A stretch of 63,548 bases of DNA, filler included, from Reticulomyxa filosa (lineage: Eukaryota > Protista > Foraminifera): assembly GCA_000512085.1 (NCBI GenBank). It is 17 parts of 17 records of this genome, joined end to end, with 100 filler letters (N's around TTAATTAATTAA, not from the genome) between each part and the next. Parts side by side here need not be neighbours in the genome. Positions count along the whole stretch, not along the records: positions 35,719 to 50,476 come from ASPP01008022.1; 16 more parts are not named here. One strand, 5' to 3'. The position numbers and the translations under genes were made by a program. The notes beneath the pieces are model-generated. The model saw nothing but the letters and a program-made list of their open reading frames with translations. It did not search any database and was not told the origin of the DNA. Position 1 is the stretch's first letter. Each line of letters begins with the position of its first letter. Shown piece by piece: positions 35,758 through 50,576 of this stretch.

Positions 35758-36228
35758 TTGTATAATCCTTTTTTTTTGTTGATTTTGCAAGGTCGCGTAA
35801 TTCAGGAAACCTCACCAAAGCTGGCCATACAAACTTTCAATCGAATCATGAATTATTTCAATACTGAAAAAAAAACAGAGATTGAGGACGAAGAAGTCAA
35901 AATGAAAACTAAGGTGCATTTGGAATTAGGAAGAACCTACTTTTATGAATTAGATGATTACGACAATGCTTATGAACATTACAATAATGCCTTGGACATA
36001 GCCGTGATTTTCCCACAGGTTTTTGACGACACCACTGTCAAATGGGAGCTGCACTATGAAATGGCCATTTTGTTGGCTGACAAAAACTTTAAACATGAAA
36101 ACGTTCAAAATTCATTTCAACTTGCGCAACATCACGCCAGTTTGTGCTTGTCTGTGTGTCTTGACACCGAAGATACTCAAGACATCTTGCAAGTGTTTCA
36201 AGAGCATGGACTTGTTTCTGTAAACTAG
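35758..36228 (+). CDS. TPR-repeat protein, C-terminal exon
   Basis: VHLELGRTYFYELDDYDNAYEHYNNALDI is a typical TPR. Confidence 0.65.
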   Translation: MYNPFFLLILQGRVIQETSPKLAIQTFNRIMNYFNTEKKTEIEDEEVKMKTKVHLELGRTYFYELDDYDNAYEHYNNALDIAVIFPQVFDDTTVKWELHYEMAILLADKNFKHENVQNSFQLAQHHASLCLSVCLDTEDTQDILQVFQEHGLVSVN

Positions 36229-37327: not shown

Positions 37328-40300
37328 ATGCTCCAACCCAACCAACAAAACAGCACGTCTCCTGGCCTTTTGCCAACTGAAAATAACGAAAAAGTGGACA
37401 ATGATAATCCAGCTGATCAAGAAATTGAAGGAGTACTCAAAGTGGAATATACTGGCAGTTAACATTTTCTTCGTTTTCTACATTAAGATACGTTGCAAAT
37501 AAAACAATTGTTATACGTTCGGACTTTTTAATTTTGCTCTCTCGACCACTTCGCTATAAGTTTGGAAAATTCTTATTAAACTTTTATTTTTTCATTATTA
37601 CTTTTTTTTTTTCACTTTGGCGGAGTGTACGTAGCTTTGCCGATGCTATCTTTTGTCCCCTTTTTGTTAACTCTTTCATTGCTTGCAAAAATAAAATGCA
37701 AGAAACGAGAGAAAAAATTGAATGAAAGAGCAGAGTTAAAAAAAAAAGCGTAGAGAGAAGAGAACATATCTACAGCAAAAAATTTTTGTTGGAATAGAAA
37801 GACGAGGTATCGCGTCGATGGAATGTCCTTATTGTCTCGAGAAGCTCTATCGAGTACCCAAGTTTTGCAATGTTTTTTGGTTTGTGGGTTGGGTTTCTAC
37901 GTTTCTCAAACCTGTAAAAATAACTGGAAAAGGGGAAGGGAAAAACGTATGAGTAGTATACATACTTTTTTTTTGTTTGTGTGCGTCAAGCTTAAGGGAT
38001 CATTTAATTCAGAAACACAAAAACGTCGACTTGAAGAGATTTTTTCAATATCATTGCACGCATTGTAACAAAAAGTTTCTTCACAGAGCGGGGTTACAAA
38101 GACATTTAAAAGTCACTAAGTTCACTTATCCATTTATTTATTATTTATACGTAACTATTTCAATTGTTTCATTTGGAAGCGATTAGAAATAAACAAATAA
38201 ATGTTACTTTCACAAGTAGTAACGATAATTTTTTTTTTTTGCTCACCAAATTTGCACTTTTGTATTTACGTATCATGCACGTGTGAGACTTTTGTTTTTC
38301 TCCAAAAAAAAAACCAGAGAAGTTTGCGTTGTTTTTTTAAGTAAAATTACAAACATACGCACACTACAAATGTGTGCATTGCAGCCATGGATCGTCGGGC
38401 GTGAATGAAAGTACTTGTCATCGTGGTGACGACGGAAAATTATTTTGTATTGCGAGCAATTCAAATACTCCAGAGTTAGTGACGGTTTCCGGGGGGGACA
38501 CGAGTGAATCTTTGAAAATTCGAATAAAAAAACAAAACATTGGTTATGACCCCTTGAATCATAGGAAAAGGCCGTTCGATGACATCCATGAAGATCAAAT
38601 GTCACCTCCTCCCAAACGACGAAAATTGTGTTGTCAGGAGGATGGTATGTATATCGTTCTCTTTTCTCGTCATGTGCTCCTTCACCAAAAAAAAAATCAT
38701 ACATGAAATGTCGTATGATGTGTGACACTGGACACGATTTATCAGGAATGAAGTGTGAAAACAAAGAAACGGATCAAAATAATGAACAAGTTAGAAAAGA
38801 GTTGTATGCAAAATATGGCGATTGTTGCACCAAGTGTGGAAAGTTATGGAGCGAATTCCGCGATGAAGTTGCGATCCTAAGCCATATCAAAGCGAAGCAT
38901 ACCTATAGTTGCAATTTCAACCAATGTCCACGTCGCTACACCCGATTTCAGTTGTTGGTGGAGCATAGGCAAGTGACTGGACATTACGGTTCAAGATGTA
39001 AAAACCCTTTTTTACATGAAGGTTTGCAAGGTTTTTTTTTTTGATATTTGTCAATTTTTTTTTTTTTTAAATGTTACCTTAGCAGTTAGAACAACTTTAT
39101 CGCTTAATTTTTTTTGAGGGGTATTGTTGAAGGAACATGGCGAAGAATTAATAGCTTACCACAAATACCAAAAAAACAAACAAACTAGGACGACCGTGGC
39201 AAACATACCTAAAGATGCCACACCCAACATTATGCTCGCATTGGTATGGCTCCGAGTTAGATCAAGGCACACCTCAGACAAAGAGTGCACGTGCGGTGGA
39301 TGGGCCTGTGGAAATGGAGGATACTCCACCGGTCGACGATAGTGACTGTGCGGCCAATGGCAAAGCGGTGATAGGCACGTGCGAGACAGCAGACAACGTG
39401 ATGACGATGGAAAGCAACGTCCAAAGCATTGAGGACATAATGTTTAAAGGACAGCTGCTGTGTCCGATTTGCTTGAAAACACTGAAAATCGAAGACAGTG
39501 GATTGCAACAACAATATGAAACGTATTTGCGTTCGAAGCAAATCGAATGCGACACTAGCAACGAATGGATGGACTATCGGTTCACTGATGAGCCGATCAT
39601 GTATGGTATTCAAAAATCGATGTTGAAATTCCATGTCGCCACACATCATCCCGACTTTGTTGTCAAGTCATTCAAAAATAATCATTCCATTCATCGACGC
39701 AGTAACACTGCCCACAACGGTCATAGCAATGGCAACAGCAACGGTAATGGTCACTGTCACAGCCATGACATTTAAATGGCCATGTCAGCAGCGTGGAAGA
39801 AAAATGAAAGTGAGATCGACGAGGAAGCTGTTAAAATGTATTGCAGCGGTGATCATCACCACGACGACAAGGGTATCGATGATAAGTCGAGTCATCCCAA
39901 TGTACTGGATGACTTGATCGGCCCTTGTTCCGGTGATTCCGGCAAACTCAAAGCAGTTCCCACTACCGCCACGTCATCTTCCAATACTAACACTTGTCCA
40001 CTTCCCACTTCTTCTTCGTCGTCCTTGCAGTTCAAAACTTTTCGGCACTTTTTTTTTTTTTTTTTTTTTTCAAAAAAAAATTATACGTTGTTGATTGTCG
40101 ACACAATTACGTGCACATATACATACACAAACATATCAAGGCCAAATAATCGGCTTACTAATCACAAGACAAAGAACGAGTTTTTATACAACCGAACAGA
40201 TCGATCTAACTTAATTGATTTTGTTACCAAAACAGTAGAACGTTTTCACTCCAATCAAGTCAACACTATTATTGCTCTTTTTGATTTTTTTTTTAAAGTT

Positions 40301-43164
40301 TTGTTGCAAGTTGGAAACAAATTTTTTTTTTTTTTTGAAAAAAAAGGAAACGTATGAAAGCATATTGCATGATTTGCCAAATGATCCACAAATGTTATTA
40401 GAGTTGATAAAGTTTTCATTTGTTATCTTGGATACCAATAAAAAATATTGTGAAAGTGTGGACCGAATTGTAACTGAAAAAATGATTGATATGACGGTAT
40501 CCATGTCGTGTTTTATTAGTTTTTTTTTGTTGTTTATTGACCATTTATAGTCTTGATTGGTTTGAAATGCCTTGCATTCTTCTCTTTCTAATCTTCTCTT
40601 CACTGTGACTGGTCAAAAAAAAAAAAAATGTGTAAAAGGCATTGGACGAAGAAAATAAGTTATTAAAACAGATGATGAAAGAACATCTTTCGGAAATGAA
40701 ACCGCAGTTGGAACAGAGGCTGCGAGACTCTCGACCTTATCAATTGTACAAACAACGATACAAGGCGGATTACTTGACGAAATTGCAGGAACAGACGACA
40801 GAAGAAGAGCGCCAATTGTTGAATAACATTGGCACGTATTATCAAGAATTGTACAAAAAAGAGGCGAATATCATTGGCAAACACAGCCAGTCGTACAAAC
40901 CTGTGGAAGAGTCATCTTCGCAACCAACCAAAATCATCCATTACAAGAATAACAATAATAATAGTAATGCATTTGGCACGACACACACCATTACCATTCG
41001 TAATATTCCCAACGGCTTGCATATCACCAAACCCTCATTTCGTAGTTTTCAAAGCAATGTCATCGCCATGGACACTAATTTGTCCCAAACCGGCGCTCCT
41101 GGTATGCATGCTACGTCGATTGCTAATATCAACGCACCTGCAGCATCCAACCATTGCGTGCCGCCATTGAAACCAACCACCATTATCACTCATAATGCGC
41201 CCACAGTTTTGAGTAATTCGTGTTTTGCAACGTTTGTCGACTTCGATTTTGTTATGTTAAAAAAAAAAAAAAAATTCACAAAACATGCATACAAAAAAAG
41301 ATGGCATCCAAACGCAACGAATACCAAAAATTAATGGAAGAGCACGCGCAACAGACATCGAAAATGGAATCAGACAAAAAAAACGGACACCGTTGGCAGT
41401 CGGGTCACAACTCCTGTCAAGCGAGCATGTGCGGTGGTAGTGGGATGGCGACGACAGACACGGATCAAATGAACAAGGAGTCTTCAGCCTTGCTATCAAA
41501 ATGAGTCAGAGTTCGATCGCCTTGGACACCTTGCAGAAACAAAAGAAGTCGCATTCGCATTTGCAAAGACAAGTCTCACATGACACGCATCCATTGTCGG
41601 GTCCACTTATTATGACAATTGGCAATGGTGCAAATGACAATCATGCAAAAAACGAAACAGTGAATTACTCTGGAGTTATAGATGCAGATGGGATCAAATT
41701 GAATATGACTAATGGACGACCTTCTTCTGCCTCGGCTTCTCATTTGAACTATGTGAGAAATGGAGGAGGAAGCGAAACAGTGACGACACCGACGGCAACG
41801 ATGTTGTCAATGATTCCGAACAATGGCTCTGCTGGCAATCTCTCGCAAGTGCGAACGCATATGTCCAATGCATCAAATGACCCTCTGGTTCAACATATGA
41901 ACCTGCCTTCGTTTTTGCTTCCACCCAATTCCAAACTGCGGCCCACGACCATTGTGACTTCGTCTCGTCCGCTGAATATTCCCAGTCTGTCCGCGGCTCC
42001 ACAGACCACTCAGCCCTTGGTCATTCGGCTCGACACTTCGAACCACGCAGGGACGACTGTCAACATTACCAACAGCAATGTTAGCTGCGCTCACAACAAT
42101 GTCAACAATTCCACCCATGTTTGGAACAAAAACAATATGGTCACTATCCCATTCCCTCTCGTCAATTTTGCAAATAATGATCCACACAGTCCACTCACAC
42201 AGGCACGTTTCATTCCTTAGTGTCATGTTTTGATTGAACCAAATAACCCCATACACACTTGAATTAAACTCTTCAGGACAGAATCCGATTTAACGAAACC
42301 ACAAAGCTCATTCAATCTCCTCCTTTGCCTGCAATGGAACCTGCGGTTTTGGCCACTCCAACGTTGAGCACCAATGCTCCAAGCCCCAGTGCCAATGACA
42401 TTACGAATGCAATTGATCAGATGCATCATCTAAATAAGTCCACGTGCAATGAAAGCGTTGGGTTGCGTTTGGTTCACTCCTTAAAAATTTCACAAGAGTT
42501 GATGCAATGCAAACAATGGCTTGAACAGCTTATGAAGGATCAAAGACTAGCCTTTGTGCGAGAATCGTCTTACTTTAGTGACAACACCGTCAAAAAAATT
42601 TATGAAAAATTGTGCAAGAATGAATACAAGAGTGTATTTGCTGTTTTTGATGATCTTCAAAAACTGTGGAGTGTTGTTCTTGCCAGACTTAAAGTTATAT
42701 TTATTTATTTTTTAAATTCTTTTTTTTTTACCTTTTTTTGTGTATATATGTTTACACAGAAGGGTTCCGATGCAGCACGACTTGCACATGGTGAAGAACA
42801 ACGTCTACATCAAAAACAGGAAGAAATGCTTGGTGTTGAGTACTGTGACTAACGATTATTAATACAATACCGAACAAAAGAAGATAATTTGATTTTCTTG
42901 TTTGTTCTTTTGTTGTTTCAGAATTTGTTAACCTGGGCCCCAGAACGTGTCAAGGAATGGTGGGACTGTAATCATTATCCTGAAACTGATAGCGAAAGGA
43001 TTATCATGACACAGATAAATGGCGAGCAGCTGGTGAATATAGTAAATAATCACACACAATTTGAAAAAATTTTTCCTCATTCTATGCATATTTATGATGA
43101 ATTAAAAAAGTATGTTAGCAGATGGGTTGAAGCAGCAAATAATCCCAGAAAGTATACATTTTGA
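37328..43164 (+). CDS. Multi-exon C2H2 zinc-finger protein with C-terminal degenerate bromodomain and SAM domain
   Basis: Fingers: CPYC...LRDHLIQKH, CTHCNKKFLHRAGLQRH, CTKCGK...HIKAKH, CNFNQCPRRY...EHRQVTGH. Bromo-like: IYEKLCKNEYKSVFAVFDDLQKLW. SAM-like: TWAPERVKEWW...QINGEQL. The start and single-gene status are uncertain. Confidence 0.6.
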
Positions 43165-47526: not shown

Positions 47527-49575
47527 TTATTGATATTTTTTGTAGATCTGGATGAAAACGTTGACAGGGCCCTCATAGTGATGAAAAACATCGTTACAAA
47601 GAGGGTTGTTACAGTGATGGAAAGCAATGTTTGGAGTGGCGCACGCAGCATATAATTGATAAAAGTTGTACAGCTTGAAAAAGTTGTCGTCGATATCACA
47701 AAAGAGAGGGAATAATCCGGGGGCTTTTGCAAAAGTTTTTAAGAATCGGAGCATAGGATTTCGTTTAAACTCCTGCCAACGTTTTGCAGCTTCAGGACGG
47801 CGATAATATGCTAAAATATACTCGATATGTATCTCAACCTCTTTTATTTGGATTGGCACCAATTCATACTTGCAATAAGCAAAGCCACATTGTAAATGTT
47901 CAAAGATTGGGAGTAACTCTTTTCTCATTATTATCAGTACTTTTACATATTGCTCGCCTTTTCTCAGCAATTTATGGATTTGTTGTACAAATTGTTTCAT
48001 TTTTTCGACCTCATTGCATCTCATTACTTTGTCCAATCCATCGATTGCCACAAGCGCATACTTTCGGTGCGTGATAATGTCCTTGATATCCGGCATGTCA
48101 ATTAGATCCGTTTTGGAGTCTGTTAAATCTACGTATTGAATGCATTTACGAAACTGATACTTTTCGCCACAAAAATCGCGTGACAAATAGTAGGAAATGT
48201 ATTTAAAAACGTGCGTTTTCCCATAATGACCAACAGGTGCTGTTAACTAAATCAGGTTTTTTTTTTTTTAAACGATACGTTAAAAAAAAAAAGAGGGGGA
48301 GAAAAAAAAGAGTGGAAAAAAAACAATACAAAAAAAAAAAAACAGACCACAAAAAGAGTCGTGCGTTGAAAACTACGTTTCAACGAATATAAATGTTTGT
48401 AGCCTTTGAAGATAGTAGAGAAAGTTTGTTCAAGCTCAGACGTAATAGCATCGTGATAGGCAGCATCAGAAATCAGCAAGTTGAACAATATGAGAGCGTC
48501 ACATCTTCGCTGTTGTATGAACCCAGGACGGAGGTTAACATACAAATAATCGGAGTCGCTGGACGATTCCAATGGAAGTGATGCTTGCGATATATGCACA
48601 CTCTCACTTGCGGAGATACAATTGAACGTATACGTCGTCCGCATCTTCTTCGTCTCATCATGCAAACATTGTATCCGTTCACTTACTTCTCTGTCGTGCG
48701 GGCCAAGTCGCAACTCGTTGCTTCGGGTGTACATAAGAGCTTCCACTGCGTCCCCGCTCGCAAACAACTCGTCTACAAATCGCTGTCCAATTCGATTCGA
48801 AACGTTCATTCCGATTTTCTCGCCATGTTTGACGTATATTACATAGGGAACTCCAACTTGTTGTCATTGTGGATTATTTTTTATTTTTATGGGTATTATT
48901 TTGTTGGTTGATTGATTGGTTGGTTGGTTGGATTGTTTGTTATTTGTTTACATTTGTATGCCTCCAAATTAACATATATGTATGTATATATATATATATA
49001 TATATACGTACCTATGCGCAGTACAGAAGCAATTCTTTCAGAATTACACACCGACAAATACACAATTTTGGGTAGTTGTGCAGAACGGAGTGCCTTTTTA
49101 ATGTCCTCACAGATCATAAGAGTGAGTCCACCAAACCCGTTTTCCACGCAGAGGTCACCTTGTTGGTTCGCATGAGCGTGAATCACCACCATGTCTGAAA
49201 TTTTGAAAAAGTGACTCAATGACTGCACTGTCAGCACTTTTGTCTGCACGTCTACAAGTCTCTTATGCTTTTCCGCCATCGTCGTGATACTTTCGTCAAA
49301 ACTATGTTCCAAGTCTTTTTCACGCAACTGTCCGATTGCATCTGTTGACAATATCGTGACTGTCGCTATTATTTCCTTCGTTTCAGGTTCGTCCTTTTTT
49401 TTTTTAAAAAAAAAAAAAAACACACACACACACACACAAAGCAAAAAAAATTCAATTTCTAATATAACATTCCAATACAAGTTTTCAATGGACATTTTCG
49501 TGAATCATATACACTCCTTCTTACCTCATGTTTGCTTTCCAAAGTTTTCTTTGATTCGTCTCGTTCAATCTATTT
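47527..49575 (-). CDS. CHAT (caspase-like) peptidase fused to STAND-type P-loop NTPase
   Basis: Exons ...-49525, 49393-49012, 48856-48348 and 48246-47527 splice in frame. CHAT: VVIHAHA and IVYLSVCNS. NTPase: LFVLTAPVGHYGKT, LVAIDGLD, VKVLIIMR. The 5' end is unresolved. Confidence 0.7.
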
Positions 49576-50576
49576 TTTTTTTTTTTTTGCTCCTTTGCGT
49601 CCTTTCATATTCTTTTTTTTGTTTTTTCTAGGTTTGTAGTCACTTCCTTTCCTTTTTATCCTTATAAAGAAGTATTTATCACATTATTAAACGCTGATGC
49701 TTCCGTACTTGAGCACGACACATGATCTGTCACTTCCTTTGACAGTCGCGGCTTGTCTTGAGCTGATACTTTTTTATGTTTGCTGTTCGTTGCTACTGTC
49801 CTTAAAACAACCTGTGCAAACACAAATACATACTTGAGACATTTTGCTTCTTTTCAGTCATTTGCTAGTAAAAAATAATCCGCTGGGATTTGTAAATATC
49901 TTTCTCTTTTTTTTTCCTTTTTTTTTTTTCCTAAGACAAAACATTTAATCCTCTCCTCCAGTGTGTTTACGTTGTTACGTAGACAAAAAAAGACTATAGG
50001 AGCAAAAAATTTCAAACTCTGTTCTTATTCATAGAGCAAGTACGTTTCACTTTTTTTTAGAGGTACCTACATGACCTCTTTGAGACAATTTTTTTAATTT
50101 TATTGTCTTTCGGATGAACAGAAGACTCCTAGAACAGTATTCAATATTTGCCTCTTTGTGTCGCTAGTACAGCGTCAAAAAGGGAACAGTGCAACGAAAA
50201 AAACACTTGAAATTATCTTGTGTCATTGAAAACTTGAAAAAAAATGCAAGTGTCAGAAACAAATATATTCCATGGGCAACGTGTCAGTTGTTCAGTCTTA
50301 TTTTTTGTTTTGTCTTGGAATTTAACAAAAGTAACCGTGACAACAAAACAATAGCGGAAACAATCACGAAAATCGAGCCACACAAGCTTGTGTACAAAGC
50401 AATACCAGCACAAGTAAAATGGAGTATGCTTTAATAGAAAGCAGACCGCATTTTCGACTTGGTTTTTTTTTTTTTTNNNNNNNNNNNNNNNNNNNNNNNN
50501 NNNNNNNNNNNNNNNNNNNNTTAATTAATTAANNNNNNNNNNNNNNNNNNNNNNNNNNNNNNNNNNNNNNNNNNNN

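Follow-up and report, generated by a model that had tools for sequence, protein, structure and literature searches.

The window, that is the whole stretch of DNA analysed (63,548 nucleotides from the foraminiferan Reticulomyxa filosa), carries three minus-strand exons on contig ASPP01008022.1 of assembly GCA_000512085.1. With the GT-AG introns removed, these exons (49393-49012, 48856-48348 and 48246-47527) form one continuous frame of a predicted 536 codons. They are 382, 509 and 720 nt long, leaving phases 1 and 0 and then the stop (127 + 1 + 169 + 239 = 536 codons). Their GC contents are 0.43, 0.44 and 0.37; the AT-rich blocks between them, at 0.25 and 0.24, contain microsatellites and homopolymers. 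The features of the gene, in the direction of transcription, are the following.

49683..49811, minus strand: possible upstream exon (uncertain), in phase, GC 0.40-0.44, CACAG acceptor
49525..49569, minus strand: probable 15-codon exon upstream of exon A; 45 nt, in phase, bounded by a TAG acceptor and a GTAAG donor at 49524
49394..49524, minus strand: probable intron, 131 nt, GTAAG..AAG, GC 0.25
49012..49393, minus strand: exon A, which encodes the CHAT-like domain except for its C-terminal third
49172..49174, minus strand: putative catalytic His (His74 of exon A), context AHA; register read by eye, the profiles did not align the His
49046..49048, minus strand: putative catalytic Cys (Cys116 of exon A), context LSVC; aligned to the CHAT Cys in profile alignments
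48857..49011, minus strand: intron 1, 155 nt, phase 1, GTACGT..ACAAG, TA and CAAC microsatellites, GC 0.25; within the CHAT domain
48348..48856, minus strand: exon B, remainder of the CHAT domain (a GVP strand plus two helices, ending near 48723), then linker, 37-residue insert and first NTPase strand TLFV
from 48521, minus strand, in exon B: candidate hhGRExE motif FIQQRRCD, from its match to environmental contig L003 and its spacing
48247..48347, minus strand: intron 2, 101 nt, phase 0, GTCTGT..TTTAG, poly-T/poly-A, GC 0.24; at the boundary of the first NTPase strand and Walker A
47527..48246, minus strand: exon C, which covers the STAND-like NTPase core and the helical domain; the AP motif is at 47724, and the stop follows 63 residues later
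48219-48217, minus strand: Walker A Lys, exon C
48042-48040, minus strand: Walker B Asp, exon C
47925-47923, minus strand: sensor-1 Arg, exon C
47578..47622, minus strand: Cys/His-rich tail, present here, conserved in neither homolog

The donor of intron 1 is strong and that of intron 2 is weaker. The possible upstream exon could use a donor at 49733 or at 49682, both of phase 0; it would add 26-43 codons, encoding a short charged N-terminal extension. A 22-nt GT-AG segment on the minus strand (49833-49812, GTATGT..CACAG) would link an ATG at 49842 in phase to the exon at 49811, and is either a very short intron or a product of chance. No long frame is present upstream of 49811 as far as the contig end at 50476, so an N-terminal sensor is unlikely. 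The full protein is predicted to be roughly 550-600 residues long.

In the NCBI annotation, the same region appears as two hypothetical proteins, one of 199 aa (49495-48896) and one of 382 aa (48809-47527, RFI_10941, P0002 below). The 199-aa model reads through the TA and CAAC microsatellites and an upstream poly-T intron. The second intron of the annotation (48373-48240) is rejected here: its donor is GTTTTC, and it deletes the first NTPase strand, which L003 retains. A preliminary description of this DNA stated that an intron separates Walker A from its preceding strand, which the homologs support, and that Walker A lies outside the public proteins, which it does not. RFI_10941 includes Walker A, but its splice sites differ at both ends of the intron, and the preceding strand is lost.

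Evidence for intron 2 comes from relatives of exon C. A search across 1.84 billion representatives returned two real ones, P0003 and P0004. P0003 is the paralog RFI_12151 (36% identity), which begins at the same LTAP, at the edge of its contig, with a CAG acceptor immediately before. P0004 (32% identity) lies on L003, a 1,130-nt JGI environmental contig without an intron at the intron 2 site. The upstream frame of L003 matches exon B residues 104-150 (E 5e-8) and, after one frameshift (200-225), runs through a hydrophobic strand into LTAP (IVVLTAP). This frameshift, near T-runs, is probably an assembly error and, less likely, the mark of a pseudogene. The intron-free contig fits an mRNA; both it and the paralog's acceptor at the same LTAP thus support intron 2 as the preliminary description drew it, over the NCBI version. 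The three exons of that description, at 536 aa or more, are borne out by the phases and, for intron 2, by the homologs. Most likely, then, the NCBI gene model is wrong and shows one gene as two hypothetical proteins.

A further alignment search for homologs (proteins of 210-668 aa) gave nothing new, and one candidate, P0005, was set aside as a repeat protein matched by chance. Paralogs, which the preliminary description proposed to count, are represented by RFI_12151 alone, making two copies found in the R. filosa genome by a search that was not exhaustive, unlike fast-expanding immune families. In RFI_12151 itself (L002:722-1165), a GTAAGT donor overlaps the stop as annotated and, with the acceptor at 960, which is in phase, would allow a possible last exon of 66 codons; at most 715 bp remain before the neighbouring gene.

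The CHAT-like half

The top language-model feature match of exon A is a CHAT-containing cluster (0.91); the two share 147 features, as many as remote relatives, or proteins that match by chance, typically do. A tblastn search with exon A against 72,556 plasmids at E 10 gave two hits, one of which, over the Cys region, is a Streptomyces CHAT-NACHT protein. Exon A scores 14.1 bits against a CHAT profile made from 79 relatives of this hit (0/1000 shuffles), 10.8 bits against a profile of 29 more diverse CHATs (1/2000 shuffles) and 12.8 bits against a further CHAT profile (0/3000 shuffles). Because the CHAT profiles were seeded from exon A's own best tblastn hit, these scores are not fully independent; the language-model result is independent of the seed.

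Signal is also found on the other side of intron 1. The first 55 residues of exon B match a CHAT C-terminal sub-profile (20/3000 shuffles), and the helix-GVP junction, read by eye, is in register with reference CHATs across the intron. With signal and register on both sides, the CHAT domain would span intron 1, and exon B is stop-free into the NTPase. Since the CHAT fold is complete only when exon A is joined to exon B, protease and NTPase would share one frame. The CHAT similarity is remote; judged from sequence, the two exons very probably encode a CHAT fold, and the spliced gene in all likelihood produces one fused CHAT-NTPase protein.

Other searches with exon A were negative. It has no Pfam, NCBIfam or PADLOC match, and CHAT (PF12770) is unmatched at the Pfam cut-off by exons A and B scanned apart, the domain being split by intron 1. 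The homolog search (proteins of 70-222 aa) returned exon A itself only, and metagenome, genome and viral scans returned no homologs. Its single-sequence model (pLDDT 34) was too poor for a caspase fold to be retrieved, with a best Z of 3.3 to unrelated chains. A haemoglobin (1it2) in the solved-structure sequence search is a chance match, and these searches were otherwise null.

It could still be argued that the NCBI split into 199 aa and 382 aa is correct, or that the CHAT likeness is chance and exon C a stand-alone AAA+-like ATPase. In its favour are the two genes of the public annotation, the lack of any curated family match and the modest profile scores, the seed of the first CHAT set having been exon A's own best hit. 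Such a reading is highly improbable: the 199-aa model has to pass through microsatellites and a poly-T intron, the signals of intron 1 are strong and keep the phase, CHAT similarity is present to either side of that intron, and the language-model result does not depend on the profile seed.

The putative catalytic residues resemble those of reference CHATs in part. The Cys stands in LSVC, where the references mostly have LNAC and some LSAC. His and Cys are 42 apart, towards the bottom of the 29-78 found in the references, and in the low-confidence model of exon A predicted strands end just before both residues. Exon A has His-Ala, whereas His-Gly is present in 29/29 and 77/77 reference CHATs (overlapping sets). 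Because His-Ala replaces His-Gly, protease activity is unproven; the balance tips slightly towards a catalytically active enzyme.

The STAND-like NTPase half

By language-model features, exon C falls among the NACHT, NPHP3_N, AAA_22 and nSTAND3 clusters (0.95). All ten of its ten family hits belong to one clan, but a third of shuffled proteins also reach 10/10. Its motifs are invariant in the two homologs at 29-35% identity. Walker A reads LTAPxxH[YF]GK[ST]H in 3/3 sequences, with a loop one residue longer than [AG]x4GK[ST]; the Lys and Thr/Ser are retained in all three despite the extra residue. Walker B is hhhhD[GHE][LV]D and sensor-1 is hhhhMR, spaced 37-39 apart versus 39-68 in references, with Met in place of the small residues ([ST]) before the Arg. 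Columns invariant across the three sequences cluster in LTAPxxHxGKxHV, hhhhDxhD, hhhhMR, YxLV and APxL, a pattern expected under selection on an NTPase core.

The structure model of P0002 is confident at residues 178-263 only. Every top match in a fold search with this model is a P-loop NTPase; Avs5, a STAND protein, ties with an AAA+ complex at Z 8.0, and the search therefore indicates the P-loop class and not the family. A profile of the three sequences places Walker B, sensor-1, a strand-helix unit and AP/GHP in register with bacterial CHAT-linked NACHT (E 0.13; 3/150 in a column-shuffle control). As a sign of STAND kinship, this register is suggestive, not strong. Exon C alone scores weakly against the NACHT profile (21/1000 shuffles). 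The NACHT (PF05729) and NB-ARC (PF00931) Pfam models give no match, NPHP3_N alone appearing at E 0.11-0.3, and the homologs show weak AAA and AAA_22 matches.

Two more motifs deserve comment; the motif names follow PMC6713354. FI[QH]QRRCD is kept in L003, lacks Gly and lies 67 residues before the Lys versus 30 in references; it may be the hhGRExE motif, set back by the 37-residue insert. The invariant AP aligns with GHP of the references, Gly being absent at that position. Where a winged-helix domain would come next, only 42-63 residues follow this GxP-like AP, and the model has pLDDT under 50 in that region. Exon C is almost certainly a P-loop NTPase, and one that probably belongs to the STAND class.

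These results agree with much of the preliminary description. The His, Cys, Walker A, Walker B and sensor-1 are each where it had placed them, the non-canonical P-loop is real and shared by all three sequences, and its proposal that a single spliced gene encodes a CHAT-like domain and, after it, a STAND-like P-loop NTPase gains support from profiles, features and motif register. Of the CHAT (PF12770) and NB-ARC/NACHT-like folds it expected, none gave a family match at Pfam cut-off with the exons scanned singly. The protein is assigned to none of CHAT, NACHT and the tripartite NLRs, because its scores stay below the cut-offs, it has no His-Gly and it carries no sensor.

The departures from consensus in both halves allow a different reading of the same fusion and folds. 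The CHAT domain might lack protease activity (a pseudo-protease), and the whole might act on a full-length NLR-like protein as its decoy, scaffold or negative regulator, as some truncated plant NLRs do. His-Ala and SVC differ from reference CHATs, the P-loop is one residue longer, and no acidic residue follows the second Asp of Walker B; 10.1101/2021.01.27.428547 and PMC7562919 describe truncated NLRs as antagonists or partners. Yet neither His nor Cys is missing, their spacing falls within the reference range, though low in it, and the residues Lys and Thr/Ser of Walker A have survived in every copy. A pseudo-protease is considered unlikely.

The missing sensor and the neighbouring genes

A fused C-terminal sensor is missing in 3/3 sequences. 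The reading frame ends at 47527 with no TPR, WD40, LRR or ANK repeats; the stop comes 63 residues after AP, compared with 42 and 57 in the homologs and about 580 in most bacterial relatives. L003 continues for 143 nt past its stop, with stops in all frames, and the next gene begins 471 bp downstream of the CHAT-STAND gene. The absence of a repeat sensor had been noted in the preliminary description and now extends to both homologs. Its Cys/His-rich tail does exist, though in this copy alone; P0003 and P0004 do not conserve it, and it was discarded both as a meaningful feature and as a sensor.

The gene directly downstream (47056-44459, minus strand) encodes an EML-type WD40 protein (Beta-prop_EML_2, E 2e-63), with a likely start at ATG 47056. 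NCBI has split this gene in two as well (176 + 577 aa), and its exons are much more AT-rich than those of the CHAT-STAND gene. As a spliced-on sensor it was rejected: it has its own start, an EML-type N-terminus, a GC content near 0.29 and an EML Pfam match.

Three further genes or frames lie on the plus strand of the contig. A 156-aa frame (35758-36228), 11 kb from the CHAT-STAND gene, has weak TPR hits (E 0.006-0.03). A multi-exon gene at 37977-39917 encodes 631 aa with C2H2 zinc-finger-like motifs. Another at 40642-43164 encodes 508 aa and has no Pfam hit; by eye, it seems to contain bromodomain and SAM-like parts. A gasdermin-like substrate gene, as the preliminary description envisaged, is not among the called downstream genes of this 14,758-bp contig, on which the upstream DNA amounts to only about 0.6-0.9 kb.

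The setting could also suit an active, nucleotide-regulated clan CD protease of ordinary cell biology (development, network remodelling or protein turnover) with no immune role. The low copy number found, the WD40 EML and zinc-finger-type neighbours, the missing sensor and the similarity of CHAT folds to separase (PMC12881547) would fit such an enzyme. Described CHAT-STAND fusions, however, occur in immune or death contexts, and the non-immune reading is distinctly unlikely.

A possible mechanism and comparison with known systems

STAND domains restrain an effector, which is released once nucleotide exchange has led to oligomerisation; caspase-like domains become active when they are brought close to one another. 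The R. filosa protein would consist of an N-terminal CHAT cysteine protease (caspase-HetF, clan CD), a STAND-class NTPase, a helical domain and a short remnant. At rest, the nucleotide-bound NTPase module would hold protease domains apart. A partner protein or signal would then cause nucleotide exchange and oligomerisation, bringing CHAT domains together to cleave a substrate in a defence or cell-death pathway.

This model starts from observed properties (the exon phases, CHAT-like and STAND-like sequence signal, conservation of motifs and lack of room for a sensor). The switch, oligomerisation and proteolysis would be as expected from the two families, while the trans partner, the defence role and any immune function are suggested by analogy only. 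A partner-triggered, truncated-NLR-like CHAT-STAND protease without a sensor, acting in defence or cell death, is given an even chance. A more specific idea is that these conserved sensorless proteins form a small family and one part of a two-part inflammasome-like system in this protist lineage, with the sensor as a separate protein. It is unlikely; if true, it would provide a first handle on NLR-type protease signalling in Rhizaria.

No report of a CHAT-STAND protein in Rhizaria was found in the literature, within incomplete coverage. If the protein is active, it carries the NLR-type CHAT protease design into a far-off eukaryotic lineage; its sequence has diverged beyond the reach of Pfam, and an erroneous gene model has concealed it. 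Since at least two organisms retain a version that naturally has no sensor, it would offer a simple system in which to study how a STAND switch is controlled when no repeat domain is fused to it. If the protein is inactive, it would be a pseudo-enzyme specific to this lineage and only modestly interesting.

The same order, CHAT then STAND, is found in the bacterial CHAT-NACHT/STAND-TPR proteins of actinobacteria and cyanobacteria (WP_330262019.1, on L005; 80 relatives, L006-L085). Their Walker B, sensor-1, RNBS-C-like and GxP positions are in register with the R. filosa protein. The distance from Cys to Walker A is similar, at 191 in R. filosa and 152-174 in 77 bacterial proteins, with an excess that matches the 37-residue insert. 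That insert before Walker A and the spliced eukaryotic gene are both unlike the bacterial systems, and after GxP most of these continue for about 580 residues, compared with 63. The bacterial motifs GxxGxGK[TS], GHG, LNAC and FxGR correspond to HYGKT, AHA, LSVC and FIQQRR.

One Streptomyces plasmid gene of this type (L005:2245-6043) stops 179 residues past GxP, the TPR array being a separate next gene. This is either a broken gene or a bacterial sensor in trans.

CHAT domains serve as N-terminal effectors of NLR-like proteins in fungi (PMC8851545, PMC12881547, PMC9815663) and as effectors of such proteins in multicellular bacteria (10.1101/2020.01.06.895854). Other eukaryotic CHAT effector proteases likewise use CHAT as the effector, sometimes on an NLR-type NTPase. 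Their genes lie next to gasdermin genes and encode TPR, WD40 or ANK repeats; neither feature is seen at the R. filosa locus.

An example of an NLR without a repeat sensor is provided by the truncated plant NLRs TN2 and CHS1 (PMC7562919), which have an effector and a nucleotide-binding domain without LRRs and act with partners. They combine a TIR effector with NB-ARC, unlike the R. filosa protein, and the likeness is one of analogy, with no kinship shown. Reticulomyxa also has C14 caspase-like proteases (ETO10778.1; PMC5982838, PMC10959488), which share organism and protease clan with the present protein. They are Peptidase_C14 proteins near animal caspases, whereas the CHAT-STAND gene resembles CHAT, gives no C14 hit and joins its protease-like part to an NTPase. 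CHAT-STAND fusions as such have bacterial and fungal precedents; new in this one are its lineage, how far it has diverged and its lack of a sensor.
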